This document shows positions 6,952 to 40,900 of a stretch of 64,000 nt of DNA, in pieces. A model generated the notes under the pieces. It searched no databases. It was not told the origin of the DNA and saw only the letters and a program-made list of their open reading frames with translations. How positions within the stretch are numbered: the first letter of the stretch is position 1; every line of letters starts with the position of its first letter. The translations under genes were made by a program, and so were the position numbers. The stretch is from Vicugna vicugna (lineage: Eukaryota), in NCBI GenBank assembly GCA_013265495.1, contig MU060707.1:2023247-2087246 (forward strand), given 5' to 3'.

Positions 6952-7030
6952 GGGTAGGGATGTAGCTCAGTGGTAGGGCATGTTCTTGGTAGCACAAGGT
7001 CCTGGGTTCCATCCTCAGTGCCTCTGTTAA
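6952..7030 (+). mobile_element. tRNA-derived camelid SINE (Vic-1-like)
   Basis: gggtagggatgtagctcagtggtag (A box) ... gtcctgggttccatcctcagt (B box); no tRNA acceptor stem. Confidence 0.8.
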
Positions 7031-13114: not shown

Positions 13115-13209
13115 TCTTTTTGTTGTTAGTGGAAGTACTGGGGATTGAACCCAGGACCTCATGCATGCTGAGCATGTGCCCCACCACTGAGCTATATACC
13201 CCTTACCCC
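13115..13209 (-). mobile_element. tRNA-derived camelid SINE (Vic-1-like)
   Basis: Minus strand reads ggtatatagctcagtggtggggcacatgctcagcatgcatgaggtcctgggttcaatccccagtac. Confidence 0.88.
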
Positions 13210-16873: not shown

Positions 16874-16980
16874 TCAGTAGGAGATTGTCCACTCTTTGAC
16901 AGAGGCGTCGTGGGACGTCGTGACCAGCGTGTGCTCGTCCAGCCAGGCCAGGCTGCTGACGTGGTGCAGGCGGTGCGCAT
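16874..16980 (-). CDS. WDR1: WDR1 exon 15 coding part (107 nt including TGA)
   Basis: cag|ATGCGCACCGC...TCCTACTGA; [35 protein letters not shown]-stop. Confidence 0.98.
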
Positions 16981-19900
16981 CTGGGGAGAAAGGAAGCGCT
17001 TTAGGCAGGACCCACAAACTCTGCTCCTAGGGACACCTTGGATCGGAAGATGGGACACCCTGGGCCAGATCATCCGCAGGGCCCCAAGAAACCAAACACG
17101 ATCCTGGTTAACCAGATACCATCCCTCTTCCCAGTGGGGAGAGTTTGGGTGATGGGGCGGGAGCAGGTGTTCTCAGCTCTGGAACCAGTGACACTCTGGT
17201 CCCAGCAGCATCCTGGCTGGAGCTCCCGGGTACCAGCACCGTCAGAGACAGAACTGCCCCTCCCCTCCCCAGAGTAAAAAACTTTCTATGCATAAAGCAA
17301 CAACATACGAACAATGCACGAACAGGACACAGCATATCTATGTATTAAAATGGGGCGACGGTGTGGGGAGAGTAACAGTTCAGTGGCAGAGTGCATGCTT
17401 AGCACACACGAGGTCCTCAGTCCCCAGACCTCCAGTAAAAAAAAATGGGGCGACAATGAATAAAATGTTGAGAAACACAAGACTGGGGGTCCCAAGCACA
17501 GAGCACCCTAACCTCAGGCCAGTGCAGTCCTGTGACCTGTGACCCCTCAGCCTGGACTTCCCACCCTCTGCCCTGTGAACTCTTGCTGCACCTTGAACTT
17601 GCTCAAGTCTTACCACAAAACTGCTGCTTTCCACGTAGACCAGGACGGCCCATCTGAGTCTGTTCTGCTCCCGCCTCTGTCCTGAACTGGCCGCCCGCCC
17701 GCATGGTGCCAGCTCGCTGGGGCCCTCCCCTACCTCTGCAGCATGCACGGGAAAACGCTCTGGAGGGCTGACACTGGACTGTTTTTAAATAGGATAGGAT
17801 CCCATTTATGGTTAACACAAAAGGCTGCCTGCCGGATAGAGAATGGATGAGAAGGGACCGGACCCCATGTAGTGGGGTGGTAGGCAGCAACCCGGGGACA
17901 GGAGGATCTGAGATCTACCCGGGGACGAGTGTGGTCCCACTCAGGGCCGCGAGCCACCTGTGGCCACGGAGCCCTTGCAGTGAGCTACTGTCACATGTGA
18001 AAATACTATATTGAGTTAAATAAAATTTACTGTTAAGAATAATTCCACTGGTTTCTTTTTAAAACGTAACTGCTAGAAAAATGCCAAGTCCACACATAGT
18101 CACGTTATACTTTTATGGGAAGCTGCTGTCCTGGAGACCGAGAAGCTGGTCATGAGTTTAGACTGAGGGGCTGGGGTGGGTGGGGAAAGGGCAGTGCTGT
18201 GGTCTGACTGTCGGTGTCCCCACCGAAATTCCTAAATTGAAAACCTAATGTCCACGGCAATGGTGTGGGAGGTGGGGCCTTCGGGACGAGCCTAGGTGAC
18301 AAATGGGATTAGCGCTTTTATAATAGAGACTCCTTCCATCATGTGAGGACACTTGCTAAGAAGTCTGTGACCTGGAAGGGGACCCTCCCCGGCCATCCGG
18401 GAACCAGATCCTTGACTTTAGCCTCCAGATCCATAAGGAGATTTCTGTGCTTTATGAGCTGCCCAGTGTGGGCATTTTGATAGGAGCCTGAACACACTAA
18501 GGCAGAAGGCGGTGTCAGGAAAAGCCCTTTGCTCAGCGGGTACCCCGGGTATGCAGACCACCTGCTCTCATGCTGGACACACGGGCGCCCTCGGTCCCTC
18601 TGCATATCCACATGGACCAGCAGAGCTGATGTTTGCTGGAGACCCAGGCCGCCACGAAGCCACCCCCGCAAAGCACAGAAGGGACCATGGGGCCTGAGAA
18701 CGCCACTCTGGAGCTGTCTGGGGAGCCGAGGCAGGCGCACGACTCACCTTGGATCTTGACCCTGGTCTCAGGGTCACTGAGGGTCCACACGTACACCATC
18801 ATGTCCATGCCACCTGAGGCAAAGTGCTCGTTGTCTGGAGACCAGGCCAGGCAGACGATCTTTGCATGGTGTCCATAAAAGACGTTGTTCTCCTGGATGT
18901 GGGTTGAAATCAGGCAGGTGGTCAGGGTTCAGGCAGAGTCAGTGGGCGTCACCTCCTCTAACCCTCCCGGTGACAGTAACGAGAGCCAGCACGCACGGAA
19001 TACTCTGTGCCAGGCTCCTGAAACCCTCACCACCTCACTGGCTCATTGTAACCACCCCCGGGTGCCCGCTGTGCGGAGGCACAGAAAGGTGCAACCAGAG
19101 ATCAAGCAGCAGCCCACAGGCCCCCAGAGCTGCCCTCGCAGCCTGTATCACATGGGCTTCACGTGCCCGCTCGCCTGCGGAGCTCCGGGCCTAGTAAGGG
19201 GACAGATGGAAACGCAGGAATGCAGGCAAGGAGGTCCTGCCTGGCGTGGACGGCGCTCCGTGCATGTGTGAGCGGGATGGAGGTGGGCGCCTCTCCCCGC
19301 AGACACACACCTCCTCACCCCGGAGCCTGGGGGTGGGCCTGCAGACGGGGGGCGGCCCCCATGCGTGGCTGTGTCTAAGGTGTGTCCCAGCCTCAAAGCA
19401 GCGTCTTACCAAAGGGGGTGGGTATGGAGAAGTCACACTTTCTAACTTAAGCTTTAGGAACGCTTCTACTGCAAAGCATTTGTCTTGTTCTTAATTCCTA
19501 GATTCACCACGACTTTCTTTTTCACATATGCCTCTTCCATCTCCTGTTCTACTCCTGCAGGTTACTCAGCCTGTTACATGCATTTATCACTTAAAATGTG
19601 ATAAATGCAGAATTTGAGAACTGTGCTACGGAGGTGGAAGGGAATCTCCTGGGAGGTCAGAGGTTCATGATGATGGAGGTGTGGACGGGAGGTGCGGGCA
19701 CAGGGATGTGTATACTTCCGTCCACGTCTGTCTTTCGTTTTATGTAAACTTTATAGACAAAGATAAAACTAAGGAACCACCGAACTCTAATTAATAATAT
19801 GTAAGCTGAAGTGTTAATGGAGAAACGTACAGATGCCTATAATTGGCTTTAAATGCACCCAAAATTAGATTCTTAGATGGATAACGTGACATAGTAAATG

Positions 19901-22900
19901 GTCAAGGTAGCATCCACGTGGTAAATCCTTTTGACTCTGCTGTCAATTTCAAACTGTCCTAAGTGTCCAAGGACTAGAGGACTGTCCACCTGTCTCGTGT
20001 CACACCAGCTCTCCCACATCCAGCAGGGACCAAGTCCCTCCAGAGTGCAGTCTCATTGGTGAAACGGGGCTACTGCTGCCTGGCACGAGTGCCTGGTGCC
20101 GACATGGGACACTTGCCCCTCACATGCCAGCGCCCTCACCATACTGCTCGGAGTGGGATGAGCTTCCAGGGCCTCTGAGGCTGTTCCTCCCAGGACCCAC
20201 CTCTGAGTGCTCACAGTTTACAGGACTTTAACAGCAATGTGACTTGGGAAAAATCTAGTCTAAGCCCTTTGACAAAGAGAAAAATCAGGTCCGGAAAGTC
20301 ACGTGGTCAGGCCAACGAGGCCCCTCCCTTTTTGGCAACTATTCTACCTGGAGGATGGAGGAGCCCGCCGGCTGCCGGACGGGGAGTCTTCTGGGCCCTC
20401 ATCACTCACATTCTTGGAGCAATAAAGCCGCATGTGTCCTGTGCATCTGCCACCTACAATGCCCAGGGTGGGGACAGAGGGTGACCTGCCCACTCACCGA
20501 GTAGCCATCAGCAACGCTGAAGACCGTGACCACCTTGCTGGCATCGCAGACGGCGAGGAAGGCGCCGTCATTGGAATACGCCACATCGGTCACGGGGCCC
20601 TTGGCTTCCAGGAGCTTGCCCTCATCCTTCAGCGTGGTGCCCAGGATGGAGTACAGGCGGACGTTCCCATCCTGCAGGACACAGGGGCAGCGGGTCACTC
20701 GCCTGACGGGTGTGCGTGCACACACGCACACACACACCTTCCTGATATCCTTCTTTTTGGAGAGAGGGTCCAGGGTACCAGAAATAAACAGTACTTCCCC
20801 CAGCACTGTCCCTGCTCGGCCCCTGTGCCAGGAGAGAGGCTCCTCCTTCCTCACGGCACCAGAGAGCACCTCCTACAGCCCTGCAGCAGTCCTCACGGCT
20901 TAGCATGTGGGCAGAATTACAGTACACTACGTTCAATTGCTTTAAAATTATATTTAAATTAATTGCATTAAAATGCAGGGTCCCAGGCACCCCTAATTCT
21001 GATTCTGCCTCTCTGGGTGATCAGGACTCTGGGTCTTCCACAAATATTCCAGGAGGTTCTAGTGCAGGTGTTCACAGGCAAACTTTGAGAAGCATCTGTT
21101 CACAAGAGAGCTCTCCAGGAAGGCCCCTAAGGTGGCCGTCCCCTCCGCCTGTGCCCTGTGCCCCACAACCCTTCGCTAACCCGGCAGGGCCCCTCAGGCA
21201 GCAGGCTCCTCTCTCTGCTCCGCGCAGCCCGTCTCCTAGCAAACCCCGTCCTCGTGGCGTCCAGGCACCTCTCCTTGGGAGGCCTCCCTGCTCTTTCAGG
21301 AGCCTGCCCTCAGCCCACCGGCCGTCCCCAGCCCCAGGGCCCTCGGGTCAGGGATGCCCAACGGACGTTCAGTTGCCTGAGCTGGACTCCCCTCAGCTGG
21401 AGCACGTAGGGGGCTTCCGGCATCTGTGCTGACCTTCGGGAAACCCTACTAAGATGGACGCACCTCGGGCACCTCCCCTCCAGGGCAGGGAGCCCCTTGA
21501 TTTTCTGCCCCCAGAGCCCTGCTCAGGGCCTGGAAGTTTAACACACACTGCATGAACTGACGAAGGTGGAGTGACTGAGAAGGAACGGGGGTGACGGGGT
21601 GGGTCCCTCTGGGGGCAGCTGAGCTGTCAGCATGCCCAACAGTCACAAGGTCCCCCGGCTGCATCTCGATGCGCTCGGGCCCCGCCTCTAACACTGGAGG
21701 AACGGTGAGGCCAGCCCCAGGCCGGGGCTCTGAGCAGAGTCCTCGAGGTCGGTGACAAGCCCACTCAGTGCCACACGCAGCAGGAGTCTGGGCTTGAGGC
21801 CGTGTGAGGAGGGGACAACATTCGAGGGGAGAAGGCTGTGCTCACAGACGGCAGAGGAGACATCTCCAGGCCCCAGAGCACAGACATCTGCCATCAGGTG
21901 GCCTGAGTGACGGGACGGCTACTTGCTGGAACTCTGTAACGCCAACAAAGTAAGTGGAGACCGGTGTGTGTGGGACAAGGGGACACGCGGTGTAAACACG
22001 GACATGCATGTGTGTGCCTGACTAAGACACACGGGCCCAGGGCTGAGGACACCCGGGAAGGTGAAACTGCCAATACCTGGAGGCACCGGCTGAGGCGAGG
22101 GACCATCAGGCCATCTCTATCTCTTTTTTAAGAAGAAAAGCAAAGGTCTAACGGGCAGGGTGTGGCCGTACGGCGGGGACAGGGCTGGAACCCCACATCT
22201 GACCCTGAGCCCCCACCCAGGGCCCTGGCTGAGAGCTGCCTTCTAGAAGGCGGAGGTGTGTCAAAAACACCCAGACAGGAAAGAGCAGGTGACAGAGGAG
22301 CTGCCCAGGACCGTGGGCGACAGGAAGCCAGACTCCAGCGAAACCAGGAAACCCTGAGGCTGACACCTCACCTCCCAGGTGCGAGGATTCTCAGGCCGCC
22401 CTCCTCCCTGTGCCCCCGAGCCCGGCTGAGGACGAGCCCAGCTTGGAGCCAGCTCTTTTCCCAGGTGCCTCACCCATGAGCTCCCAACTGCTCACAGGGC
22501 TAATGCCCAGGGCAAGCGTCCCTGCCCGAGTCCCCGAGCACAGCCCACCCCGCTGCCAGGACCCTTGGTCTCCCAGGACGCCGCTGCATCACCCAGGGGT
22601 GTGGGGGGATTCTCGTTCAGGCAGCAGGAGGCGCCCCGGCTGGCTGCCACGCCCTCCCACTGCCCCAGGGCAGAGGGCGTGAGGCAGGGCCTTACCGCGC
22701 CCCCGATGGCCACCGTCTCGCCGCCGGGATGCACCGCCACCACTTCAGGCTCGTAGCCGAGGTTGTCGATGCTGAAGCACTTCCTCTGGTCCTTCAGCAG
22801 GACGATCTAGGAAACACACGGGCAGCCGTTAGAGGCGCAGAGGCCCCGGGATGGATGGTTCAGGCCTGGGCTGGGCACTGTCCTGAAACTTTCGGGGGTG

Positions 22901-25900
22901 GCATGGGGTAGGGAAGGGCAGCACCGGGGCTCAGCCACCATAAGTGGGATCAGCCCTGGCCCTGTGACCCTGTGGTGTCACACAGGGTCTGTCATCTGTC
23001 AACCATGCCAGCGACAGTTCCTCGTCACAGCGTCGGAATAAACACTGGCTGTATCACCATCATCACTGTCACGGCTACATAATGACGCTGCTGTCACCAC
23101 CAGCACTGAGTTCCTGGAAAGCCATCCGACACCTGAGCTTTCATTTCTCCAACTGCACAGTGAGCGTAATAAACGAGCTTTGCTGAGCAGAGTTCTTATG
23201 GGTTCAAGAAGACACAGCACTTCAGGGTGACAGGGCTCAAAGCCGACACTAGAAACGAACAGGACAGGCTAGACTTCCAAGTTCTCAGGTCCAAAGGAAT
23301 ACCTTTTACAATCCGGACCTGCAGTGTGTGAGTCCCCACGGCCTGGGACAGTGCCGGTGCCCCTTCTACAGAGAAAACTGGGGCCCCTGGCTGCTGACTC
23401 CAGCAGGTGGACGGCAGCGTGGGGATTCCCAGATTCTCAGAGGCCCTCTGCTCTCTGCCAGCCTCCAGCCCCGGCAGGGAGGGAAGGACAGACAGACGGC
23501 TCCCCGCCAAGTGGCCTGGAGGCATCTGCTACCCCTCCCCAAGCCCCAGCCAGCACCTGCCTTGGTTTCCTCCTACTTGACTCGGCAGGACAGAGAACTC
23601 AGGCGGGCAGAGCGCCCCGGTGTCCAGGCACCACAGAAAGGCCCTGGTCCTGGCTCAGCCACCTAGAACCGTCCTGAGCCTCCTCCTCCCAGGGGTTAAG
23701 AACCCAGTGGCGCCTACCCACCCCGAAGATGGAATTCAGTGCTCAGGGGAAATACAGTCTCTAATGAAAGCAAACAAAAACCGCAGCTAGAGTCCACCGA
23801 GTGTGAGCCACTAGGCTTGCCACGCATGGTGTCCCCAGGTTGGCAGGCTCACCTCCGGGCAGATAGGAGAAAATGAGGCACAGGGCATTGTCCACGGGCT
23901 GACACCCCACAGCTCTCAGAGCTGAGCTGGAGCTCACGTCCAGGCGGCAGGACCCCAAATCTCTGCTCTGGCCACCACGCTGTGCCTTCCGCCCTCTGGC
24001 ACACAGCCCAGGACCCCCCAGGACGGGGGACCCCACACTGTCCCCACCCCTGCTGCTCCTCACCACGCCTCCCGGTTCTAACTCACTGGACTGACCAGAC
24101 AGCTTGGCCTCCACTTGTGACGACTATGGCTTCATCCCACTGTATCCCCGCTCAGGCCACCAGCTGCCCCAGCCCCCTGACCCTGCACCGCCCGGGGGTG
24201 TACTGTGGGCTGTGTTGTGGGACTGGGGAGGCGGCAGCACCCTCACTGAGGTCTCTTACTGACACTGCACCTGGAGAGACATTCACTCCATCAACTGCCC
24301 AGCTCAGGCAGGGCCCTTACACACCTATACCTGACAGACAAAGGCTGCGGGCAACTGCCCAGATCTGCCAAAGAGGAGAGACTGGAGCGTGGCTGCTCCC
24401 TGACCTACGATCACGGGCCCCTTCCAGCACATTCTGAAGCAAAGGGGAGTTCTACAGAAGCCCTCTCCCTAGAGCGGCAGTCAGGGCGCCCTAGGGAACT
24501 GGGGGAGCTACGGCCTGTCACAGAACCATCACCACACCTGACCCCAACGGCCCCAGACTCCTTGGAATCTGTGGGGCCCAGGGGAGAACCCTGCCTGTGC
24601 TGGCCCCTCCCAAGCAGAGCACCAGGTGGCCCCTCTCTGAACGTCCTCGTGTGAGCCTGGCGACGGCTTCAGAGGACAGCCTGTCCCGACCGCAGCTCCG
24701 TGGACAGGAGACTGAGGCTCGTGGTCGGGAGAAGGCAGGGCCAGGAACTCGGAGCCCCAGCTCCCATCCTCTCCCCGACAAAGGCCAGGTGCTCAGATAC
24801 CAGGCTGAGAGCGCCCACTTCACGGAGCTGCAGCCCACTCTGCCTGCCCTTCTAGAAGGTCAACTTTCAGTCTCTCCTCCACCGGCTAGGATGCTCCGGG
24901 CTGCTGATTGATTCCTTTTGTACCCCCACTGACCATCAAGGCTGTCAGCAGTAATTGCTTGGCAGGAAGTTGGTGTTATCTAGGACACACAGGAATCCTT
25001 TTTCCCCGAAGCAATTAAGTTCAGAGAACGGAGGAGGGGTGGCGGATCCGGGTGACAGCTCTCTGTGGCAGGTTTGCCACTCGTGCCAACGGGGGCTCTG
25101 TCACACCTGCCTTCTCTGATCTGCACGCTGGGGCGCCCAGGTCTGCTGACAGACGGTGTTCACAATGGAGCACAGTCTTGTGTAAAGTGGGTCAGGCTGG
25201 GGTCTCAGTCAAGGGCGATCTGTCCCAGAAATTCCAAGAGATGGGTGTAGAGACCTTACTGCCTTGAATGAGAACCAGGCTGCAAAGCTGGAACCCCGAG
25301 CCCTATTCTGGGTGCTACCCTCCCCAGCCATCACGTGGCCTCGCGAAGTCACGGTCACACTAAGCCTCAGCCCGCTTGCTTGTGAAGACGGTTCAAGTCG
25401 CCCAAAACGTACTTTCTCCTAATCCTCCCCGGGAGCTGCAAGGGATGAGGACACAAGCTCAGAGAGGGTGAGGAAAATGCCTGAGGTCACACAGCTCACA
25501 GGCTGCAGGGCTCGGATCTGAACACGAGAGACAGCAGGGCCACCCTGGCTGTGCCTCTCGTGGGCCTCCTGGGTGGTGGACATGCAGCTCGAGTGTGGAC
25601 CCTGACCCAGCTTCAAATCCCAGCTCTGCCTTTGCTGGACGCAGACCCTGGGCAGCTCAGCCTCTGAGCCTTGGTTTCCTCCCTAGTAAGACGGGGACGG
25701 CGCCGTGCCTAACTGACAGGACTGTCCATGCTTGGTGAATCCCCATGAAGCCCACAGTCTGGTGCAAGCAGGGCTCAGTAGAAATGGGGTTAAAGGGGGT
25801 GAGAGGGAAGTGGGGACCAGACAAATGCAGCTCGGACCTGCTCTCCCACCTCTTCCTCCAGCCAAACCCCAGCAGGAGCAGTACCTGCCCGATGCACACG

Positions 25901-28900
25901 ACCACGGCGTAGCCCCCGGGGCCGACGGCCACACACTTCGGCTGGACGTCCAGCTTCACAACTCCCTGTCCGCTGCAGAGAGAAGGGAAGTCGTTACTTC
26001 AGTCTCAGCGTGGGCAGTGTGGGTGTAAACACTCACTGCAGAACCACGGCAATCTGGGTGACTGAGAAGGAAATTCCACTGCAATCTCTCCTGAGGGAGC
26101 CCTGGCTAAAGCACGGGAGGGGTAAGAAATGACTCAGACTCTGGGAGAGAGAAGAGGAGTCACGAAGGGGCTGTGATGATGGGAAGGGGGGGGGAGAAGT
26201 CAAGGGAGTACTTTCTGTTCCGCTCATCAGTGACAAGGGCCCACTTCATCACTGCCCTGTCATGGCTTTTGTCCCCACGTGTGTCAGCCAGACCCCTCAG
26301 CATTCTCTGGGTACAGGCAGAATTGGGTTCTGCCCCTCCCCCGACTCCTGTGGAATAACCAGTCTCCTCCGCAGAGTAATTAAAAAGTAAACCCTGTATT
26401 TTTTATGTGTAAAAACTGTTATCTTTACTTTTGGCTAAAACTATGAATGCATCCTAGAAAAATCTGTACATGGAAAAATTTGAAAATGGTAAACTGAGAA
26501 AAATTTCACATAACTGGGCCACGTGTGGAGTCCCTGAGGCTCAGTGAATGGGCCCTGTGACAAAGTGATCAGGCGTGGCTTTGCCCTGGGTCCTCTCATC
26601 AGCTGAGGCTCAGGATGGTGGCACGGCCCCTGGGCAGGACTACACGAGGAATGTGCTAACGCCGGGGGCTCACTACAGGCAGCACGGAGAGGACACCAGG
26701 GCCTGGACACCTGGGTCCTGGGGTGGCTTCTGCACTCACAGGGAGGTTTGTCTGACTCTCAACGCCTAGTCTGCCCAGGACAGGTGAGGCGCATGGACAT
26801 GCTGGTGTGACCGTGCCCGAGATGTCCTCCAGGAGCCGTGTCCAGTGAGATGTCCAGCAGGACACGGGGGTCTACACACAGGACAGAGCGAGGATGGAGC
26901 TCACGGTGAGACCAGGCCTGTCCCGTTCTAGCCGGCATCCCAGGAACCCTGCATCTGGCTGAGGTCTGTGCGGGCCGCCTGGACTCTGACCGGGCTCCCG
27001 GCCGAAGGCCTTGCATTAGGAGAGCGAGTGCTCAGGGCAAGAGGTGCGCGGAGCAGAGAACACCGTCACTGGCAGTAAGGGCTACAGGCCAAGGGTCCCA
27101 TGGGGCTGAGGCGCATCCGGACCCCGGGCAGCTCTCACCTGTAGTCCCGCAGTGTGAGGCTGGTGTACCGCACCGTGTCATCCATGCTGCAGCTCACCAG
27201 CTGCCCGGACTCGTCCACCGTCATCCTGGACACCTGGTTCGTGTGGCCCTTCCCGGCGAAGGAGTCGTTCTCCCCTGTCTCCGAATCCCAGTAATGTGGG
27301 GCGGAGGGTTAAGGAAGAGTCCGGCCTCCGAGAGGCAGTGCTTGTCCCCTGGGGAGGCCAGGGCCAGTGCCACGTCCCAGGCAGCACATTAGGGACAGGG
27401 ACTGGGCACTGGGCTTGAGGGGGATGGCTTGAGGACGTCCGGGTCCAGATTTCAGAGAGCCGACCTTCTGGTAAACCAGCAAGAAGGCCTAACACATGTC
27501 AGCAGGCTTCTTATAACCCAGCGTGCCCACTCAGCCCGCTCATCTACAGAACAGGACCCAGGAGGTCACAGGACTGTGAGGACTGTGATGACGGACTCAG
27601 CTCTGTCTGAGATGGGGCTCAGCAGGAAGCTGCTGTCCCCTGGGGCCCCGTGTAACTGAGCCCACGCTTCCCCTGCTCTTTCTAGCCTGCGATCCAGCCC
27701 ATGGCTGTGCCACCAGGTAGATGGCCCTGGGCTGACCCACCTGGGCAGGCCAGATTGGGGGCTGCTGGCGCGGGGCACTCCGGTGAGGTGGGCTGTACGT
27801 TACGAGACTTTCCTTTTACACCAATAGTCGATGACTCATTTCCAGTGCAGACTGTCCACCTAGGAAGCTATGTGCATGTTCCACTGCTAACACATTCTCA
27901 AGGGAAGGCCCAGCTCGGTGCTATAGGAGGTTAATGCCATAGTGCGCTGACACCGGGGTTGGGCACAAGGGGGCGGTGTCAAGTGGGGAGCGGCACTGGG
28001 GCAGCTGAGGGCGGCAGGACTGGGGAGGCCTGCACGCTGCTCCAGTGCCTCCTGTGCCCAACTATAGTGCAGGCTTGGGCAAGATGCCCCTGCTGTCCCT
28101 CCATCTCCTTACACCTGAAGGGGTGGACGGTGACTTGTCTGCCCTCCTCCCTTGGGGTTGAGGGGAGGCCTTCCCAGTGAGGAAGCCCTGCAGAGACAAG
28201 GCAGGGCTGCGGAGGTGGGAGAAGTCCGGGGTTTGGGACAGACCAGGAACCAGGCTGACGAGGGAGGGCAGGCCCCTCAGGCAGCACCAGTGCCCCTCCT
28301 TGGGGGACGGCAGAACCAAGCAGCCACAAGGCCCCGCTGAGGCTAGCCCCTCAGACAACTGCTCCATCGCTTGCCATCCTGGGAGGAGGGGTCACTGGCT
28401 CCAGGCCTCCAATGCCAGAACGGGGTTGGTTGTAGGGGTGCCAGGAGACATTACAGAGGGACCAAACAGCACCTCACAGGGAAGGGAAGCTCAGTTCCAC
28501 ACAGATCTGCTGCCGCCAGGAGGTGCGATGTTGGCGAAGGTGCCCTAGCCATCTGAGTTTCACTTTGCCCATTTTTAAAACAAGGGGACTCTACCAAAAG
28601 GCTCTAAGTCCATTGGATTTTAACACATTGATTCTGCTGCTTGTGAGAGGGGCGAGGCCGGCAGCAGGCCCCGCGCGGGGAGAGGCAGCTCCAGTTCAGG
28701 GAAGCTTGGCCACACAAGTGACCCATCAGGTCAAGGTCAGGGCCCAGAGCTGGAGGCCCCGTGTGTGGGCCTGGCGGCACCTCTCAGCAGCCAGGACTGG
28801 GCAGGAGTCCTGTCGCCACCTGGCTGGCCTCGCTTCTGGCACCGTGGGAACAGGAAACTCCCGCCTCTCCTGCCAGGGGCCCGGGAGCCAGCCCTGTGAG

Positions 28901-31900
28901 TCAAAGGATATTAATGTGTCCGTCGTGGCTCCCAGAGTAGATATACGACTTGCCGCCGTTTTTATGCACCGTCAGGCACTGGATGGATTTGCTGTGACCC
29001 TATGGAGGAGACAGACGGGCGGGTGAGCTGAGGACACGCCATCCTGCCTGTGACTGTCAACCGCTCTCCCCTGGGTGAGGGGGAGGGAGAGGCCCTCAAT
29101 GCCGCAGCCGCAGTGGGCCTGAAACACCGCCCACCAGCCTCCTGAGCTGACTGACCACCTGACAAACCAGTGACATTCGGACCCTTCCCTCCGAGGCACT
29201 CAACCCCAACCCGGGTGGGGACACTAACTGAAGCCCCAGCAGCAGAGCGTCCAGCCTGCGCAGCCTGACCCAGGCAGCTTCCGCCCTAGAAGGCAATGCT
29301 GCTCACACCCGCGGAGGAAGCGCCCCACCCAGGGCTGACCCTCGACAGCGGTGAAGCAGTGGTGCCCGGGTGCTGGCGGGAGGCGGCGGCGGTGGGGAGC
29401 CTCTGGGCCCCGGGGGCCGGAGTACTAGGAGCGGCTCACGGCTTGTCCTCTACCCAGAAGCACAGCTCGCGACTCCAGCATGTGTCTTCCGAGAAAGGTC
29501 ACGCAGTTCTCAGAGACTGGAGAACCAGTAAATGGACCCAAAGTCCCTTCCATAGGACAGCAATGCACCAGCCCTGCTACTTAGAGCCAGGTCCTCAGAG
29601 CAGCGTCGATCCCATCTAGAGTCTTGTCCCTCACAGCCCGGGGACTCAGAACTGCTCTCAACAAGCAGCCTGGTGACTTGTGCACGCCCCCTGCCTGGGG
29701 CGGCAGCCTCACCTGGAACTTGTGAGAAATGCGAGCTCTTGCACATCCCACAGGTGAGCCCTCTGAGTACAGGGGCCCAGCCCAGCTGCCATCTTCTAAC
29801 AAGCGGGCCCTCTCACGTGATTCTGATGCACCCACAGGCTTGAGCCAGAATCACCTGGGAGACTCTTACAAGTACCAGCCTCTAAGAGCCCTCCCGGCAG
29901 GCTCTGATGGGATCCTGCTGGGGCCGGCCAGGCAGCAAGCCTGTTTTGGAAGCTCCCTACTGGTCTGAACACGTGCCAGGGCCAGGAACTGCTATTCCAA
30001 CCCCAGCCTGTGCCTGGGCTCACGCACTGCCGACCTCAGCACCAAACACCTGAGGATTCACGTGCACGCGGCAGGAGAGCTGGGAAGGGTTTCTCTGACA
30101 ACTGCGAACGCCCACGGGGGTCCTGAGATGACCTGGGGAAGGAACCGGAGCCTGGCCAGCAGTGCCCATGCCACTGGCAGCAGTGAGTGGTCAGGCCCAG
30201 GCCTCCCTCGCTCCCAGGGTGGCTCCAGTCCGGGTGCCAACAATCCGGGCTCCACGTCGGACGGCCACCAGGCCCACTGTCGGAGAGGCCCATGGGAAGC
30301 TGCTTTCGTAGAAAGACAGAATGGGCTGACAGCAATGCCTGAATCTCTAGAGGAATCTTCCTCCATCGCATGGAGGCCCAGTGAAGCGACTGTCCAGGGG
30401 ACCCCTCCCAGCTCCGCCAGCTCTGTGCCAGGATGCACACACCTCCACTTTATCCTCATCACACTGGGCTGGCAGTCTGTCCGGTAGGTGGTCCCCACGC
30501 CCCCATCCTCAGGGCCAAATCAAGTGAACCTTCATGGGAGCGGAGGTGCAGGACGGGCACTGAGGGCCAGTGTGGCTCCTGTACTGGACCGCCCCCCACC
30601 CCCGTCAGCAGCACCCCACCTCGACAGGACGCGGCAGGCACCAGGCCCCGCTGGACCTTGTGAGCCAGTCACAGAGTTAAGGAGGCTGAGGCCTGGCTCA
30701 GCCTCTTCTTCCCAGGGCAATTGTCCCAGCCCCTGGCCTACACAAACCCTACAAAGCCCAGACACCCTCCGGAGCCTGTCCGCACAGCCCTGAAGCAGCT
30801 GAGTGAGCAGGGCTGCAGGTCTGGCCTGAGAGGGCTCATGGCGGGGAGGGGATGACATGCAGCTCTGCTGTGGAAAGACCCCCCTTGAGAGCACAGCTCA
30901 GAATCCTTAGTCAGGGTCACCCTCAAGCTCCACCTACTTCTCCAAGTTCATTTCCTTCCACTCCCCACCACCCCCTCATGCCTTACCTGCTCTAACCACA
31001 CAGCACAAGGGCCTCACACTCATTCCCACATTCCAATCCCACACATCGTCAAGGTCCAGCTCCGAGGCCTGCTGGACCCCCACGTCTGTGGCGATGCCCC
31101 ACCACCTGCCCTGTCCTGGGACTCAGTCTGTTCCCGGTCCTGCCTCACCAGCGAGGACGGAGCTGGTGAACTCCCAGCTGAGGGAGGCAGACCTCCTAGG
31201 GACAAACGACCCTGACAGCAGGGGCGAGGGCCACTGCCCTGGACCTCAGGCCCTGAACACCAGCTTTACAGCAGCTCCGGGGGAACTTGGCATCTGGCCT
31301 CCCACCTCTGCTAAACTCACATCCCCAAAGCAACCAGCATCCTGCTGTTCCCAAGACCCCCAGGGCGGAGCCCCTTCTCCACAATGGGGCGCACACTTCC
31401 CTCCCGGCCAGGACCTGCCGGCAGAGCCGCTCCTGGGAATGGCCTCACCTTGATGACCCGCAGGGGTTTGCTGGGGTTGTTTTTGTCCAGGTAGTTGATG
31501 TAGCCAGACAAGGAGATGCTGAGGAGGTGGTCCTTCTGCCATAAGCAGCCCAGCTGCTGGTCCAGAACGTTGGAGCCCATGGTAAACGTGTTGACGACAG
31601 AGTTCATACTGACGTCCCAAATTTTAGAGGTTTTGTCTCCAGAAGCAGAAAGCAAGTGGGAGCCATCAGGACTCCAGCTGATCTACTCAAACAAAATGGT
31701 GATCAGGTCAGAGCACTGTTGGGGGAAGAGACCTCAGAAAGCAGCTGGTCCACAGATCCCCTTTCTGAGCGGGGAGAACCAGGAGGTGATGGAATACGCC
31801 AGGGCAAGGACAAGAAGAGGGTCCTGGCCACTGGCCTCTCCAGGCCACATCACCCTGTTCCATGTGGCCTACCAGCACTCCACCACTGCCCCTACTTCCA

Positions 31901-34900
31901 ACCCCGCGTCGCAAGCTTCCAACTTCAACCCATGTACGGATGATGGCAGACAGGCCCGATCACACCAGAGGACCCCACAGACACAAACCCATACGTACGG
32001 CATAGATGCCGCCGTCGTGAGCCTTGCTTCCTCCCAGCGCGCACACCTTCTCTCCCGTCTTTCCGTCGTAGATGTAGATCTTTCAAGAAATACAGATACA
32101 CGTGGGTCACGGGGACATGTGATCGCTCTCGGCTGTCAGCACGCTCACTGAGCTCTCCCTATTAATAACTGCTCCATCATCAAGAGTTGGGGACTGTGAC
32201 TCTTACAATAAAGATTTAATGTAAATTAGTGTTAAAAGATGAGTTTTGAGCTCCTTTAAAAGGATCTACCATGCTTTGATGACACAGCTCCTCAATGGAG
32301 CTGCATCCCGAGATGGGGGGGAAAGAGGGAGACTTCTAAGTTCTGCACATTGAGACCAGTTTCCTAAGTCCATCTGCTCTGAACTCACAGAGGATACGAG
32401 ATGAACCCCCACCTCCACGGCCCTCAGCCCTCACCTGGCCGTCAGCGCTGGCTGTGGCAAATCTGTTCCCGTCGGGGGAGAATCGCACGCAGTTGACGAA
32501 GCGGCTGTGGTCCTGCAGGAAACGAGACAGTTACCCACCGTCGACAGGCAAGTTCAGCAAGGCTCTCCGTGAAGTATGCAGCCCATGCCCACCATTAGTG
32601 CGGACCACCAGTCCCCGGGAGGCTTTGGAGCTTATTAACACAAGTGCTAAGCAGACTCGCTGGGAGGTCCGACCCAGCCTGCCCACCTTGGCCAGGCGCA
32701 TCTCTGCCTGGGGGGGCCTCCCTCCGCTGTGGCGGGCCCCCTGATCTCTGCAGACAGAAATGGCCCACCTCCCTCCGGCCCCAGAGGAGCTCAAGCCCAA
32801 ACTTCCTCTGCTTAGTGAGGCTGGGAACAGGAGGCTCTTCCCCGAGCCCCTAGGGCCTGGCCCCAACCCAGCACACAGCAGGCATTTGGTGGGCATTTGC
32901 TGAACCAACTGAGGTTTGTAAAGAAGTTAAACAGCAGTTATGACCTTCATGGGAAGAGTCTGAGTGACTCAGGAGACATGGCCTCCAGGAGCGATTCTGT
33001 CATCCAAGTAAGCAAATGACCTCACTCTTTCCTCAGTCAAGAAGGGTTTGCCTCAGAGAATGACCCTTTGAAAAACCCGTAAGCCACCCACAGGACCCCA
33101 GCCCTTCTCCCTCCTCAGCTGCAAGCACACGCTGAGCGTTAGTTACCAACTCTCCTCCGTGCACGGGGTTAGTTGCCTCTAAGGATACGAACACACAACC
33201 TGCAAGAAAGGCAACTCGACTCAACGCATCACCTGCCCCCATCGACCCTCCAAACAAATCCCTGGCAATTTTAAACTGCGAGCTGCTGGCGTGGAAGGGA
33301 CGGCGTGTGTTTGATCATGTGATGGGCTGAGCTGTGTCCTGAAGAAATAGGCTGAAACCCCAGGTACCTGTGATGTGACCTTACGGGAAAGAGGGTCTCT
33401 GCACACGCAGTCAAGTTAAGATGAGCTCCTCAGGGTGGGCCCTAAGCCAACACCCTGGTGTCCTTCTGGGGAGAGGGAGACGTGGACTCGCTGCAGACAC
33501 AGGGAGACACCACGTGAAGATGGAGGCAGAGACTGACTGGGTGACGCTCCCACGGCCACGAACGGCCAGTTTTGCCTTCTTAGTGTCCTGTGTCTGCTCA
33601 GTCTGCTTCTCAGGCCCACCTTTCCTGCTCCGAGGCTTGTGTTCTGAGCTGGGAGACAACTGCTTCCCAGCAGGCACGCAAACCGCCAAAATGAATGAAA
33701 GTGAAGATGAATCAACTTTCCCAGCAGGAATCCGTCAGGCCCTCTGACTGTTGTTCCTCCGTGACTGTCACTCACCTGTCATCCTCCCACCTCCAGGGGC
33801 CCCCTTTTCTTTTTTTTTAAATTCAGGAGACAACAAGGCCCAGAGAGGCTGGGTTGTGAGAACACAGGTCTCCAGTTTCTCGTCAAGAGCTCTGGACCCC
33901 ACCGTGCTGGCTCTGGGCCCTGGACAGAAGGCAGGCAGGCCGGGCGAGGAGCCACCCAGAGGTCAGATCCTTAACTCTTCAGGCCGAGTGCCACTGCTCT
34001 GCTGTCCCTACACCTGTAAGGGAGCCAGCTGCACATCGAGGCCCACGTCCCTCTGTCCCTGTCAGCCCCGGGCTGGTTCAGACCCAGTGGTAGGAGGATT
34101 TCTGGGGCCAAGCCCCCCAGGCTTCTCTCAGTCCTCCCAGAACTGCCCCGCGGGGAGGACAGGCAGGCAGGAACAACTCGTTCTGGATGAGCTCAAAGGA
34201 AAAGCTCTTCAGTGACAAAACCACAGTCGCAATCCTGGACATCTGCCCAAATGTCTGGTCCTCTCGTGTCTGACCTCTGCTGGCTCACCGTCCCTGGTTC
34301 CAGTTTCCTCCACTGTGAGGTGGACGCGGGAGGGGGCTGGGACCAGCTCCCCACCCTGGTGCCTGAGACTGATGGAGACCCGGCCAGACTTCCCCCCAAG
34401 AACCAGGATGCCGAGAGCTCACAGCAGTGGAGCAGACCTCAGGGCCAAATGGGGGCGATGGGGTGTGTCAGTGGGGGGTGACTGCTCTTTACTGGGCATG
34501 AGGATACACTGGGAACCAGAGGGACACCCAGCCACCGTGCAATTCTCATTTGCCAAACTCCTGTTTCTCTGGTCCCCGAGAGGAGAGCAGGAGCACCCCC
34601 CACACAGCCCAGCTCAGAGGTCGGAGTACCCGTCGGTGCTGCTGCCCCTCCCCTTCCCCGACTGCCTGCCCCTCTCAGCTCTGATGCTTCAGGGACATCA
34701 CACATGTGGACACCATCTGTCCATCTTCCCACTGGGTGCAGACCGGACAGGGCACAGGCCCCCCCGGGGACTGGGCGCTGTGGCTTCAGAAAGTCTTCCT
34801 GGTCCGCTTTTCCTGCAACTCAAGCCAAGAGCCCAAATGGACAGGAGACTGATGTTTGGTCCTGAAATAGCCCATTTAAAGGGAGGAACAGTGAGCAGCC

Positions 34901-37900
34901 CATTAACCAAAAAAGTGTGGGCTAAAAATAGCCCACACTGCAGGGAGGTGAGGCCAGAGTACAGAAGAGGACTGGGTGTGGGGGAACATCATGGGCGCTT
35001 TGGACGATTGAGTCCCTATCCTTCCCTCTCTCCCTTCCACCCTAGAAAGGCTCTGGCCACCCCCTGGGGTGAAGGGCCCGGGTGCCTGGTCCCCTCCAAC
35101 ACACCGCAGCGCTGGCGGGACTGTGCTAGTGGATCTGCCCGGAACCTCCCCACTGTCATTACCTCCCCACACCCTGTTATTACCCATCCCCCACATCGTT
35201 ACCTCCCCAATCCTGGCATTACTTCCCATCATTCCCCGCTCCCCACACCATCACTGCCCCCCCTCCCCTCCCCCCACCACTGAGAAATCGGAGCTGGGAA
35301 CAATTAGCTAATAAGTAGGTAATGCACCAGGGTCCACGTCACTGACAGGGACAGAGCGCCACTGGGCTCCAGGGCCTGACCAGCGGGTCAGCTCAGGTGT
35401 CCCCTGGGAGCCCTCCCTGGTTCCAGCAGCCTCAGCTGTGTCCTGCCTGTATGATGGCTACCCTCAGCCTGGACGCCCTGTGCCTACCTGCCTCGTTCCC
35501 TCGTCACAGGCTCGTGGAGGGACACACGGTTCAGATGACCATGACCACTGCCCCCTCCCTCCCTCCACGGTCAGCACCCTGAAACTGGGTTTCCACCCTG
35601 CCCTGAAATGCTGCCCCTCCCTGCTTCAGTCCACTGCCCCTGCCCAAACCCTGCTCCTCCGCACTCCGAGAAACCTTCCTGTAAAGTGCCTGGGGAGCAG
35701 CCCCGCACTCCTCGCCCTTCAAGAACCACACCCCCTCCTCCCGTCACCCTGGACAGATCTGCCCAGTTACCACTTTCCTCTGCAGAGAGAGGACCTGATG
35801 AAGGGATAAAAGGTTCATTCTAACCCTCCTTTGGCCACTGACTGTCCACGTCAGCTTGGCTGTCAGCTCAGGGGGATACCGGGGAGATGAGGGGCAGAGG
35901 GGAGCAGACCCGCCCTGCCGACCTCCCGGCACGGCCATCGATCACTAACGCACACACCACTCTCTGAAAGCCAACACAAGGGGGAAAGGTGGCTAAGGAT
36001 GACGCCAAGCCATCTGTGTGCCCAGCCCAGGGCCAGTACAAGGCGGGCACCTGATACACACTTGAACTCCAACTTCTGCTTTCAGTCATGAATAAAGACA
36101 CAGGACAAAGGGAAAAACAACCACTAGAAAACCTTGCACATTAGAGCTCAAGTTCTGCTTAACTGTCTGAGTGGGTGATACTTCCAGTAACTTCCAAGCT
36201 GTGCTCACCTCCACCATGCAGAGCCACAGCGATGAGTGAGGCACGAGGGCGCCGCGCCGCGCGGTGCCCCTGGGCAGAGGGAAGACCCGGAGGCCCCTCT
36301 GCGGCCAGGTGCGCTCGCTTGCCCTCAGAGGCCTGGGCAGACGCTGCAGCTCGACATGCAGGTCCGGGTGAATGAGGCCCTGACGCTTGCTGCTCTGAGC
36401 AATCATCCCATCAGACACGCGCTATCCCGTGGACCGTGGACACAGCCCTCAGAGGTGCTCACTATGGGAGCAGTGTCCCCGGTCATAGGAGCAGCCGACA
36501 TGCTCACCCGACAGAGGAGGAAGCAGACGCCTAAGAGGCAGAGAAGTCCGCCCGAGGCCATAGCGGCCCAGGTGCACACGGGCAGGTGAGTGGGAGACGC
36601 TCAGCGGGGCCGTCATCACACCTCCAGGTGCCGCCACAGGGGTGTGCTGGGCAGGAAGAAACCCCCATAGGAGAGGCAGAAATAGGCAAGGTCCCTCCTG
36701 CCCCCTTCTTTTCAGGCCACTCTTAGGGCCTCAAAGGGCAACCTAAACTCCTGGGCACAGCCGGTCTCCTGTGACCCTGGGGTCACTTCCCAGGGGGGAC
36801 GGGGCCTATTCTGCCCACAGTTCCTACAGCCTCTCAGCCCATTTCTAGTTCAGGCAAACTAGGACTAATGCCAGATCAGGGGCCTGGGCAGGAACCGGGA
36901 TGGTACAGCTGAAATTGGGCATGACTAAGCCTTGTCTACACTCTCGCTCTGCCAACACGAGAAGCTGGTTTGAACCAACAAACTGATGAACAAGAAAGAA
37001 AAGCACCGAGACCCCCCTACTCAGGCCAGCAGGGGGACGGCGGCCAGTCCCGTCTGCATCTGAGACACTGCTGCCCTCCTGCCTGGTCCGAGCCGCCTTA
37101 CAGCTGCTCTGGCAGGTACTGAAATTTGGAACACGACTAACTCCTTTTTTGAGGCAGCAACTTGAACTCGACTCCTCTGTGCTGCTCACTTGCTTACCCC
37201 TCCCTCTACAGCCCTAAATGTGGCCCAGAGGACGGTGGCAGAAGCTGGAACTGGGTGGATGGGGACCCTGCACATTACAGCCTTGCTCTGGGGTGGTGAG
37301 GGCCGTGCAGATGCATAAGGAAAAGGCCAATCTCATCTTACAAGGTGCTACAGGTGGGTGTGGGGGGCCCTCCTGTCCTTCCTACTCCAGGCCAACTGAG
37401 CCTGTTGGAATCTTTCAAAGATGTTCGGCAACGCCTCACAGCTGCTCAGACATCCACCAGCATCTCTCCGTCTTCCCCACAACTCTGCGGTCCAGTGGGG
37501 GAGGGCCATCCCCACCCTGTTTCCCTGGGGGCCCAGAGGCACAACCAGCCTGAGGGCTGCACAGCCAGCCAGCTACAGCGCTGGCCTGTCACCCAACGTC
37601 CCCCATTCTCAGTCCACAGCCCCTGATCTCTGCTGGGTCCCTACCCTGGAAGACTTCAGGATGAGCTGTGTGCCCATCCTCGAGACAGGTGCCAGCCAGG
37701 CCAGCGTCTCTACGTGACACACTTGGGCCGGGGCCGCAGGGTAGGGGCAGTGTTCTCAGGTTAGAAAGAAAAATGGAAAGAAAAGGAACCTTCTAGCCAA
37801 GTCCCCGAGTCAGCCCCCAGAGAAGACTGGCAGGGTGGTAGAGCACAGGTCCGGGCCAACTCCGGACTTGAGTCCTGGCTCCAGTCACCTGCCACTGAGG

Positions 37901-40900
37901 CGCTCTGTGCTGGGTTTAATCCATACCAGCGAAGAGGAAATGATCCCTCCTTGCTCTCAGGGCAGGAAATGGAGCCCCGCCCACCCAGAGCCCAGATAAC
38001 AGCCAAGAGGAACCAAACAGACCTGGGGTGAGGTGGGGAGGGGAAGGGGCACAGGGAGAGGGAGATGGGGAGAGGGACTAGGACAGTCTCTTGCTGCCAC
38101 AGAAATCGCTGTCTCCCTCCTCCCTCCCCTGGGCCCAGCGCAGGATGCCCAGACTTGACTCAGCATTACTCACAGTACCTCATCCTGCTTAGGAAAAGGC
38201 TGACCTTGAACCACGCCTCCCACAGAGTGCCACCACCCACCCAGAGCAGCAGCCCTAGGAGCCCGCCTCCGGGAGGGAGGTGCAGGGCACTAGGGAGGGG
38301 CTCCGGGCTGCACCGCCCACCGGCCCTGCTGGGTGGCCCCTGGAGGAAATCAAACCTGTTTCATCACCAGTAGAGAACCTGGGGAGCTCCTCTGCACCTG
38401 AGCCGAGGAGATCTGTCTGGAAGAGCTGCCCACAGCCGAGTCCTGCTCTCTGGGGAACCGCTGAGGACTGCCACTGCCTTTCCGGCCACACCTTGCCCAC
38501 TGCTTATGATTCACTGTGTTGTCATCAAAGTTAACAAGGCTTCTCACTCAGTGAGCCACTAACGTTCCTGGGACAAGGCCCCAGACCTCGGCAAATCCCA
38601 GCTCAGCCACCTCCAGGGCACACAGCCGGCCGTAAAGCACCACATGCTCTCCACACAGCCACCGGTACTGGCTGCCTCTCTGGTGTTTTCACAAGAGAAT
38701 CGGGAGGGGGAGGTTCGGAACCACAGCCACCCTGGGACTCGAGTGCCGGCTGTCCCCTTCCAGGTACCCTCCCTTCCACACGCTAGCCTCAGACCACGGG
38801 GCAGGAAACCAGCATCGTGGGCTACCGTGGACCTGCAGGTGCTATGTATAGCTCAAATTCATGGTTACATTGCTCTCCTGCCCATATCCCCACACCCATC
38901 ATGCAGATGGGAAAAGTGAGGCGTAGAGAGGTTCAGAACCTTGTCCCAGTCAGGAAGCATGTGCAGAGCTGGCACTGAGACCCCAAAGCCATTTACACCC
39001 AAAGCCTGTGACTCTCCAGGCAAAGCGGCTAACTCTCCTCACTGTGTGTCACTTCACAGGTGTCACCTGCCCTCATCACCTCTCTCAGGGAGGTACCAGA
39101 GGGGCAGATACAGATATCCCTGGAAACTCACCTCCTCTGACATTTTGGTGGCTCAGGGGATCTCAAGCTGGTACAATCAGAAGGCAGACTGTTACGTGGC
39201 CTGGGCTCCCCTTTCTAACAAGGCACTTCCAGACCAGGACGCTTACCCAGTCACCCGATGTCAGAGATGCGTCACCACCCCTAGCCACCTACCCAGCCAT
39301 CCCAGGATTGACGGTGTGCAGTTGGGACCTTCTGCCATCAGCATCTAACAGGTCTAGACTCCGCCGGCTTCAGGTAAACCACAAAATCCACCCAAAAACC
39401 ACCCTATAGAGAGAAGCCCACTTACGCCAATTGTGAACTTGAACTTGAATGGTGGCCCCTCAAAGAACGCGGCACAGTTGTCATCGCTGCCAGTCACCAG
39501 GCGGTACGGCCGGCTCTGCTTGATGTCCACGCTGTTGATGACTTTGTTGTGTCCTGTGATCTCGCCCACGGAAGAGCCACTGTCCCACAGGAAGACGGCT
39601 CCGAACCTTCACGCAATGAGAAGAGTCACAGGAAAGAAAAAATCAGTCCCAGGAAGGTCACTAAGACGCAGGCAGTGGTGCTGGCAGCGCAGCCCTGCTC
39701 ACATCCGTGCTCCGTGCACGCTGCCCCAAGTGCGCAGGATTTTCTAACAAACAGGAGCCATCCCAAGTGCTTCTGGGAAGGGACTAGACGTCTGTGTCTT
39801 AGGTCCAGACCCAGTGAGCCTCCCACGTGAAGGTGCCTTAAAAGCACCTGCCAGGGAACAGCTCTAGGGCTTTGTCAGTTTCACAACAGTTTTACTGGCA
39901 GGGGGGTGGGGTGCACAAGGAAACACACAGTTACCCTTCCCTACTAGAAAGGAGACGCTGCCTTGTTCTCGGCTGGCAGTCAATGAAAATGTATTGTTTT
40001 GGTTACTCTTTGTAACTGAATGAAACAGGAATTAGGATCAACAGGAATGACTTGAAAAACTATGGAAGAATTAATTAGTACTGATCAGAACACACATTAG
40101 GATCCTCTGAGTAAGTTCCTACCAAGTTCAAGTGCTTGATGGCAGCAGAGGTGCCAGGGAGGGACCCTGACTGCACTTGGAATAAGGAACCCTGGGCCAT
40201 GGTACTGACCCTGCTGGTCCCTGGACCCAAGTGCAGCAGCCCGCTACGGCCCCTACCCAGGGTCCATGTGCCCCGCTCCTTAGTGAGGTGACTGTAGGGC
40301 TGTGCCCAGCTAAGGAACACACCAGCCCCCCCGGGCACCTGCTGGGAGGGACCCCAATATTGCTTAGAAGCCGCATCACTTTCAGCTCCCCCTTTCCTGC
40401 TGCCTGGAATGTGGGCACGCCAGCTGGGGTTCTAGGAGGCAAAGGGCCAAGGATATCAGATAAGAGAAGGTGCCTGGGCCAGGGACAAACCCTGGGGCTC
40501 TCTGCTGTTACACGTGGTTTTCCGTCACGCGGTGCTGAGGCCAGCCCTAAAGGAGACCCGGTTCCCACAGGATGAACACACACCAGACCAAGCCACACTG
40601 ATGTCACTGCGCCCTACCCACCAGGGGCGCCCAGGAAACAAAGCAAAGCAAGGGACAGGGCAGGAGGGGCCGGGCCAGAGACTCACTTCTCCCTTCCTTC
40701 CCCGACCACTGCGATCCTCTTACTGTCTTCCGTCCAAGCAATGTCCTTGATCTTCCCAGCGAAAGGCTGATACTCATACTTCAAGAGATGCTCCTTCTGC
40801 GTGGTATCCCAGATCCTCAGCTTCCCAGATATGTCTGCGGACACAACGGGGCAGTGAGGCCACGTTCACTACTGGGCCAGGGCCGCGTGGGCAAAGACAA

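Follow-up and report, generated by a model that had tools for sequence, protein, structure and literature searches.

Intron 9 of WDR1 in Vicugna vicugna as a probable U12-type AT-AC intron shared among bony vertebrates

The window analysed here is a stretch of 64,000 nucleotides from Vicugna vicugna (contig MU060707.1 of assembly GCA_013265495.1, positions 2,023,247 to 2,087,246), the minus strand of which carries the gene WDR1 (AIP1). The ninth of its 14 introns begins with AT and ends with AC, and with a probability that we place at roughly 0.95 it is U12-dependent and of the AT-AC subtype, judging from a 5' splice site and a branch-point sequence that each agree with the U12-type consensus at nine of nine positions. 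An initial annotation of the window had proposed this class, and the proposal was borne out by the terminal dinucleotides, by both consensus matches, by conservation in other vertebrates and by catalogue entries. As a U12-type AT-AC intron it is already known, being listed for human and mouse, and it is annotated here in one more mammal.

The intron, its signals and the host gene

The intron and its immediate surroundings are laid out as follows, in coordinates of the window.

27296..28911, minus strand: intron 9, ninth of 14, 1616 nt, phase 1, AT-AC, assigned to the U12 type
28903..28911, minus strand: predicted U12-type 5' splice site ATATCCTTT, intron positions +1 to +9, 9/9 to RTATCCTTT
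27308..27316, minus strand: predicted U12-type branch-point sequence TTCCTTAAC, 9/9 to TTCCTTRAY
27296..27297, minus strand: 3' terminal dinucleotide AC, acceptor CAC/AT
28912..28999, minus strand: exon 9, 88 nt, ending with the first base of an Asn codon
27139..27295, minus strand: exon 10, 157 nt, followed by a normal CAG/GTGAG donor at 27139/27138

With slashes marking the exon-intron boundaries, the minus strand from 28999 to 28900 reads ...ccatag/GGTCACAGC...GGACACATTA/ATATCCTTTGACTC..., and from 27320 to 27285 it reads ...ACTCTTCCTTAACCCTCCGCCCCAC/ATTACTGGGATTCGG.... Exon 9 thus closes at 28912 with GGACACATTA, the last bases of which are CACATTA, and the intron opens at 28911 with ATATCCTTTG; the 3' end of the intron at 27296 is CCCCAC, and exon 10 starts at 27295 with ATTACTGGG. 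When 28912 is joined to 27295, the result is ...SHDGHINYWDSETG..., a single open frame that is the same as in WDR1 of other mammals, and the Asn codon is split A/AT, which places the intron in phase 1.

The branch motif TTCCTTAAC is followed by the last 12 nt of the intron, 10 nt and then AC, a spacing that replaces the N12-AC given by the initial annotation. The candidate branch adenosines at 27309 and 27310 correspond to positions -14 and -15, and either would be close to the optimum of 11-13 nt from the 3' splice site used for branch sites in the methods of PMC6717393. By what is established of minor splicing, the donor ATATCCTTT would be bound by pairing first with the U11 small nuclear ribonucleoprotein (snRNP) and later with U6atac, while pairing of the U12 snRNP with TTCCTTAAC would bulge a branch adenosine 13-14 nt from the 3' end (position -14 or -15), and the nearby AC would then be selected as the 3' splice site by its distance. 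The other 13 introns of WDR1 are ordinary GT-AG introns, which the major spliceosome would remove.

Both signals are unique in their surroundings. When both strands are counted together, RTATCCTTT and TTCCTTAAC occur once each in the 64 kb, with 0.39 occurrences expected for each, and the break in the reading frame has one of these 9-mers precisely at either end. Apart from this donor, the minus strand has donor-like 8-mers only deep in introns 5 and 4 (GTATCCTTAG at 33181-33188 and ATATCCTTGG at 40449-40456, respectively), and a further decoy, TCCTTAAC, lies in intron 8 (30676-30683, minus strand) with an AC 16 nt further on. None of the decoy minor-splice motifs stands at an exon end, and their number is about that predicted by chance. 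Tandem repeats were looked for in the region of intron 9 and none were found.

The exons of the host gene were mapped by tblastn with the WDR1 proteins of dog (P0024) and hoatzin (P0042), and their boundaries were then refined; two rows of that map are needed here.

16874..56637, minus strand: WDR1 (AIP1) coding region from ATG to stop, 15 exons, 606 aa, from the tblastn exon map and a splice-site scan
32079-31999, minus strand: exon 7, 81 nt

The assembled coding sequence comes to 1821 nt with one stop, which is terminal. Comparison of its 606-aa product with full-length WDR1 proteins of eutherians showed 18-30 residue differences, the product being roughly equidistant from the proteins of cattle, dolphin, macaque, and dog. 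The protein encoded by exon 10 is identical at 49 of 51 positions to residues 353-403 of PDB chain 9qfq_P, entered as “WD repeat-containing protein 1”. On account of these two similarities the host gene is recognised as the WDR1/AIP1 orthologue. Its introns comprise 13 of the GT-AG kind, and AT-AC ends are found in intron 9 only; the AT-AC intron is indeed the ninth of the 14 in the rebuilt gene, as the number originally attached to it implied.

It could be supposed that the locus is a pseudogene or an unspliced copy in which the motifs match the consensus by chance. No point was found in favour of this explanation, which is extremely improbable and is refuted by the intact structure of the gene: the frame of 606 aa is intact over 15 exons with 13 canonical introns, each 9-mer is expected less than once in the window yet both fall precisely at the frame gap, and seven other vertebrates have kept the same intron.

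Two side observations concern public models of the same gene. The dog UniProt model A0A8I3RQX4 (P0024, 754 aa) bears an N-terminal extension of ~150 residues rich in Arg, Pro, and Gly, which aligns to the GC-rich region of exon 1 and intron 1 at 56046-56637 of the window; the alignment suggests that the extension is read-through of intron 1 and not real protein. In addition, the rodent WDR1 models P0278 and P0280 (579 aa) are short by 27 residues, the length of the 81-nt exon 7, and may represent an isoform, or a model, from which exon 7 has been skipped.

Alternative boundaries and public gene models

The need for AT-AC ends was examined in two ways. In the first, every GT-AG, GC-AG, and AT-AC pair was enumerated over a range of -45/+60 nt around the donor and -80/+45 nt around the acceptor, and no in-frame GT-AG pair was present in that range, the only GC-AG options being ones that delete 13-22 conserved residues. 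The assertion of the initial annotation that only AT-AC restores the frame therefore holds within these distances in the sense that the GC-AG options, which do exist, come at that cost. In the second, a boundary scan blind to dinucleotides was used to maximise similarity to the hoatzin WDR1 protein. For introns 2-8 and 10-12 a GT-AG placement was among the best in every case (the GT-AG boundaries of introns 1, 13, and 14 were set by hand), whereas for intron 9 the scan returned only 28911/27296, 28910/27295, and 28909/27294. The mRNA is identical for these three placements, since the intron and exon 10 both begin with AT, an ambiguity of 2 nt; none of the three is GT-AG, and only 28911/27296 is AT-AC. 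The peptide DGHINYWD is reproduced only by 28911/27296 or its slides of 1-2 nt, and bovine WDR1 (NP_001039811.1 / Q2KJH4) agrees with the spliced product across the junction. The consensus matches of intron 9, complete at both signals, compare with at most 5/9 for the donor and 7/9 for the branch site among the other 13 introns.

The 7-mer CACATTA had been pointed out as occurring at both junctions and as a possible source of error. It is present at both, at 28918..28912 and 27298..27292, the first copy being wholly exonic and the second being divided CAC/ATTA. As a source of junction ambiguity it was ruled out, for the two copies stand in different registers and their use as boundaries would lead to a frameshift.

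An alignment of 122 public WDR1 proteins showed how existing models treat the junction. While 98 of them read DGHxN-xWD across it, 24 (about 20%) do not, these deviants being found among P0172-P0267, P0097, and P0116 and being mostly UniRef or Ensembl-derived models from fish. In 18 of these, HIN runs on into IL..., as the donor does when translated (AAT ATC CTT, N-I-L). The others comprise models with SLIFASH and fragments with FLN...PH, both from translation of the branch site (TTC CTT AAC, F-L-N, in the fragments), and some in which residues are deleted. Annotators without provision for AT-AC do err at the junction of WDR1 intron 9. The expectation that annotators restricted to GT-AG might be misled is in this way sustained by the 24 models, but the 7-mer to which the error had been attributed is not its cause.

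The same 24 models are the one point that could be brought forward for the view that the true boundaries are other GT-AG or GC-AG sites and that the AT-AC ends are an artefact of forcing the frame, since they use different boundaries at this junction. They disagree among themselves, however, and translate the U12 donor or the branch site; no GT-AG pair in the range enumerated keeps the frame, the GC-AG options cost conserved residues as stated above, and the join DGHIN-YWD is supported by the 98 concordant models together with the bovine protein. Boundaries other than AT-AC are accordingly judged highly improbable.

For mouse Wdr1, Table S7 of the Minor Intron Database (MIDB) gives alternative 5' and 3' splice-site usage of exactly 1.0 in nearly all tissue columns shown, and in its Table S5 the sole retention value is exactly 1, in thymus only (PMC6717393). 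The values in both tables look like artefacts of junction placement and not like biology. For the values of 1.0 we offer the interpretation that the AT/AT ambiguity lets the read aligner slide the junction by 1-2 nt.

Conservation, catalogue entries and class

The intron was compared with the corresponding loci of hoatzin (L001), spotted gar (L002), blue-tongued skink (L003), bilby (L004), Nile tilapia (L005), rat (L006), and the field mouse Apodemus speciosus (L007). In 7/7 of these vertebrates the same Asn codon of DGHIN/YWD is interrupted in phase 1, and the ends of the intron are A/ATATCCTTT ... CAC/AT in all seven. The donor ATATCCTTT is invariant in the eight species and identity does not extend past +9, as would be expected if only the motifs recognised by small nuclear RNAs were constrained. 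Branch-site-like motifs (TTCCTTAAT, CCCCTTAAC, TTCCTTATC, TCCCTTAAA, TTCCTTAAC, and TCTCCTTAAT) end 10-13 nt before the 3' end of the intron in the seven loci, and the length of the intron ranges from 308 nt in the gar to about 2000 nt in Apodemus. In the bilby, all 14 detectable exons were mapped and the AT-AC junction lies between exons 9 and 10. Across bony vertebrates, in short, intron 9 has kept its position, its phase, and its motifs. The best 120 matches of the homologue search were all vertebrate; a separate Atlas search found AIP1 clusters in arthropods, plants, and fungi.

The supposition that the intron was likely catalogued already proved correct, human and mouse being both present in Tables S1 and S2 of MIDB (PMC6717393). 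Table S1 places the human intron at chr4:10083179-10084442 (1264 nt, ENST00000499869) and that of the mouse at chr5:38535341-38537138 (1798 nt, ENSMUST00000005234), and in Table S2 it is entered among the conserved minor introns, with the human 5' splice site TTAATATCCTTT and branch-point sequence TTTTCCTTAACC scoring 98.2/97.5 by position weight matrix (PWM) and their mouse counterparts TCAATATCCTTT and TTCTCCTTAATC scoring 96.7/86.7 (PMC6717393). WDR1 also appears among the genes with U12 introns in a 2025 preprint (PMC12637451). The human intron is orthologous to the one described here, is likewise AT-AC, and shares with it an identical 5' splice-site 12-mer, TTAATATCCTTT, and the same branch core, TTCCTTAACC; it differs in length (1264 nt vs 1616 nt here) and in the branch 12-mer (TTTTCCTTAACC vs TCTTCCTTAACC here), while exon 10 in the window differs from the WDR1 chain of PDB 9qfq at 2/51 residues. 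The mouse intron, also an orthologous AT-AC intron 9, has the 5' splice site TCA/ATATCCTTT, the branch-point sequence TTCTCCTTAATC, and 1798 nt.

The AT-AC subtype makes up about 22-24% of minor introns and GT-AG about 72% (PMC6717393). Intron 9 has the same internal donor and branch consensus as the GT-AG U12 introns, and would share their spliceosome, but it is of the rarer subtype. Terminal dinucleotides on their own do not separate the classes, however: some AT-AC introns are U2-dependent (Wu & Krainer 1997, Dietrich et al. 1997, as cited in PMC6717393), and the internal motifs therefore decide. Removal of intron 9 by the major spliceosome in spite of its unusual ends is accordingly an alternative for which a precedent exists, but it is very improbable here. 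U2-type AT-AC introns share the terminal dinucleotides, but they have neither an ATATCCTT donor nor a TCCTTRAY branch site near the 3' end, and intron 9 possesses both; its donor is the full U12 consensus ATATCCTTT and not of the U1 type, and a perfect TTCCTTAAC stands 12 nt from its 3' end. From fish through to mammals the donor and branch motifs have moreover been kept, whereas the intron outside them is variable, and the human and mouse orthologues are classed as minor by the PWM criteria of MIDB (PMC6717393).

Three considerations nevertheless count against the assignment of intron 9 to the U12-dependent class. For the vicugna, minor-spliceosome dependence is deduced from the sequence and the established splicing model; the class was assigned by counting consensus matches, the PWM scores quoted being those of the human and mouse orthologues; and the branch 12-mer of the window, TCTTCCTTAACC, is one flanking base off the human 12-mer to which the MIDB score of 97.5 belongs.

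The redears allele and wider meaning

According to the initial annotation, the hypomorphic mouse allele redears (rd) affects the second base of the intron 9 donor, and this was confirmed at second hand, the change being T>A at the second base of Wdr1 intron 9 (PMC5023164, PMC6698799). The redears transcript carries an in-frame deletion of 6 bp, accompanied by some normal splicing (reported in one of PMC5023164 and PMC6698799). Redears is a mutation of a U12 donor because, by the mouse donor TCA/ATATCCTTT given in MIDB, the base at +2 is the T of that donor (ATATCC).

The genome of Apodemus offers a possible explanation for the size of the deletion. Exon 9 ends there in GGACATATCA/ATATCCTTT (L007:22720-22745), with its last three bases matching the mouse 12-mer, and ATATCA, a near-copy of the donor, stands 6 nt upstream; the rat has ATATTA at this place (L006:24365-24390) and the vicugna window ACATTA, without a near-copy of the donor, so that the cryptic donor ATATCA was seen only in Apodemus among the genomes examined. 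If the mouse is like Apodemus, the mutant would read ATATCA/AAATCC and the minor spliceosome would slip 6 nt upstream, whereby exactly six bases would be removed to give G-H-Y-W. By this analogy the upstream ATATCA may explain the 6-bp deletion of redears, and the same change at +2 would probably be more severe in the vicugna, since the ATATCA fallback donor is absent there. In the open literature library that was searched, no paper contained “Wdr1” and “AT-AC” together in its text, and the link between the two may merit explicit statement.

Elsewhere in the window, the Rfam scan returned nothing relevant, its two matches being tRNA-like elements downstream of WDR1 at 6955-7027 (plus strand) and 13129-13201 (minus strand). 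They score 31.1 and 47.9 bits, respectively, against the Rfam tRNA model, and were read by ARAGORN as having an odd anticodon and as tRNA-Ala(AGC). Because these scores are low for real tRNA genes, the elements are probably tRNA-derived short interspersed nuclear elements.

The practical meaning of the intron lies in annotation and in the reading of variants. Annotation pipelines need to allow AT-AC at WDR1 intron 9, failing which corrupted models ensue (about one in five among the 122 aligned), and variants at its donor, branch site, or AC acceptor are to be judged by U12 rules and not by GT-AG rules. WDR1 is a disease gene, associated with autoinflammation and thrombocytopenia. That its output is limited by minor-spliceosome activity through this one AT-AC intron, or in a narrower form that redears splicing slips to ATATCA, is a doubtful though conceivable proposition, and the notion of the initial annotation that actin turnover could be rate-limited by this intron is speculation that found no support here; MIDB Table S3 gives high expression of WDR1 in every tissue (PMC6717393). 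If output were so limited, defects of U4atac, U6atac, ZRSR2, or RNPC3 would lower AIP1, and the lowered AIP1 would play a part in phenotypes of neutrophils, platelets, and the pyrin inflammasome that resemble WDR1 deficiency.

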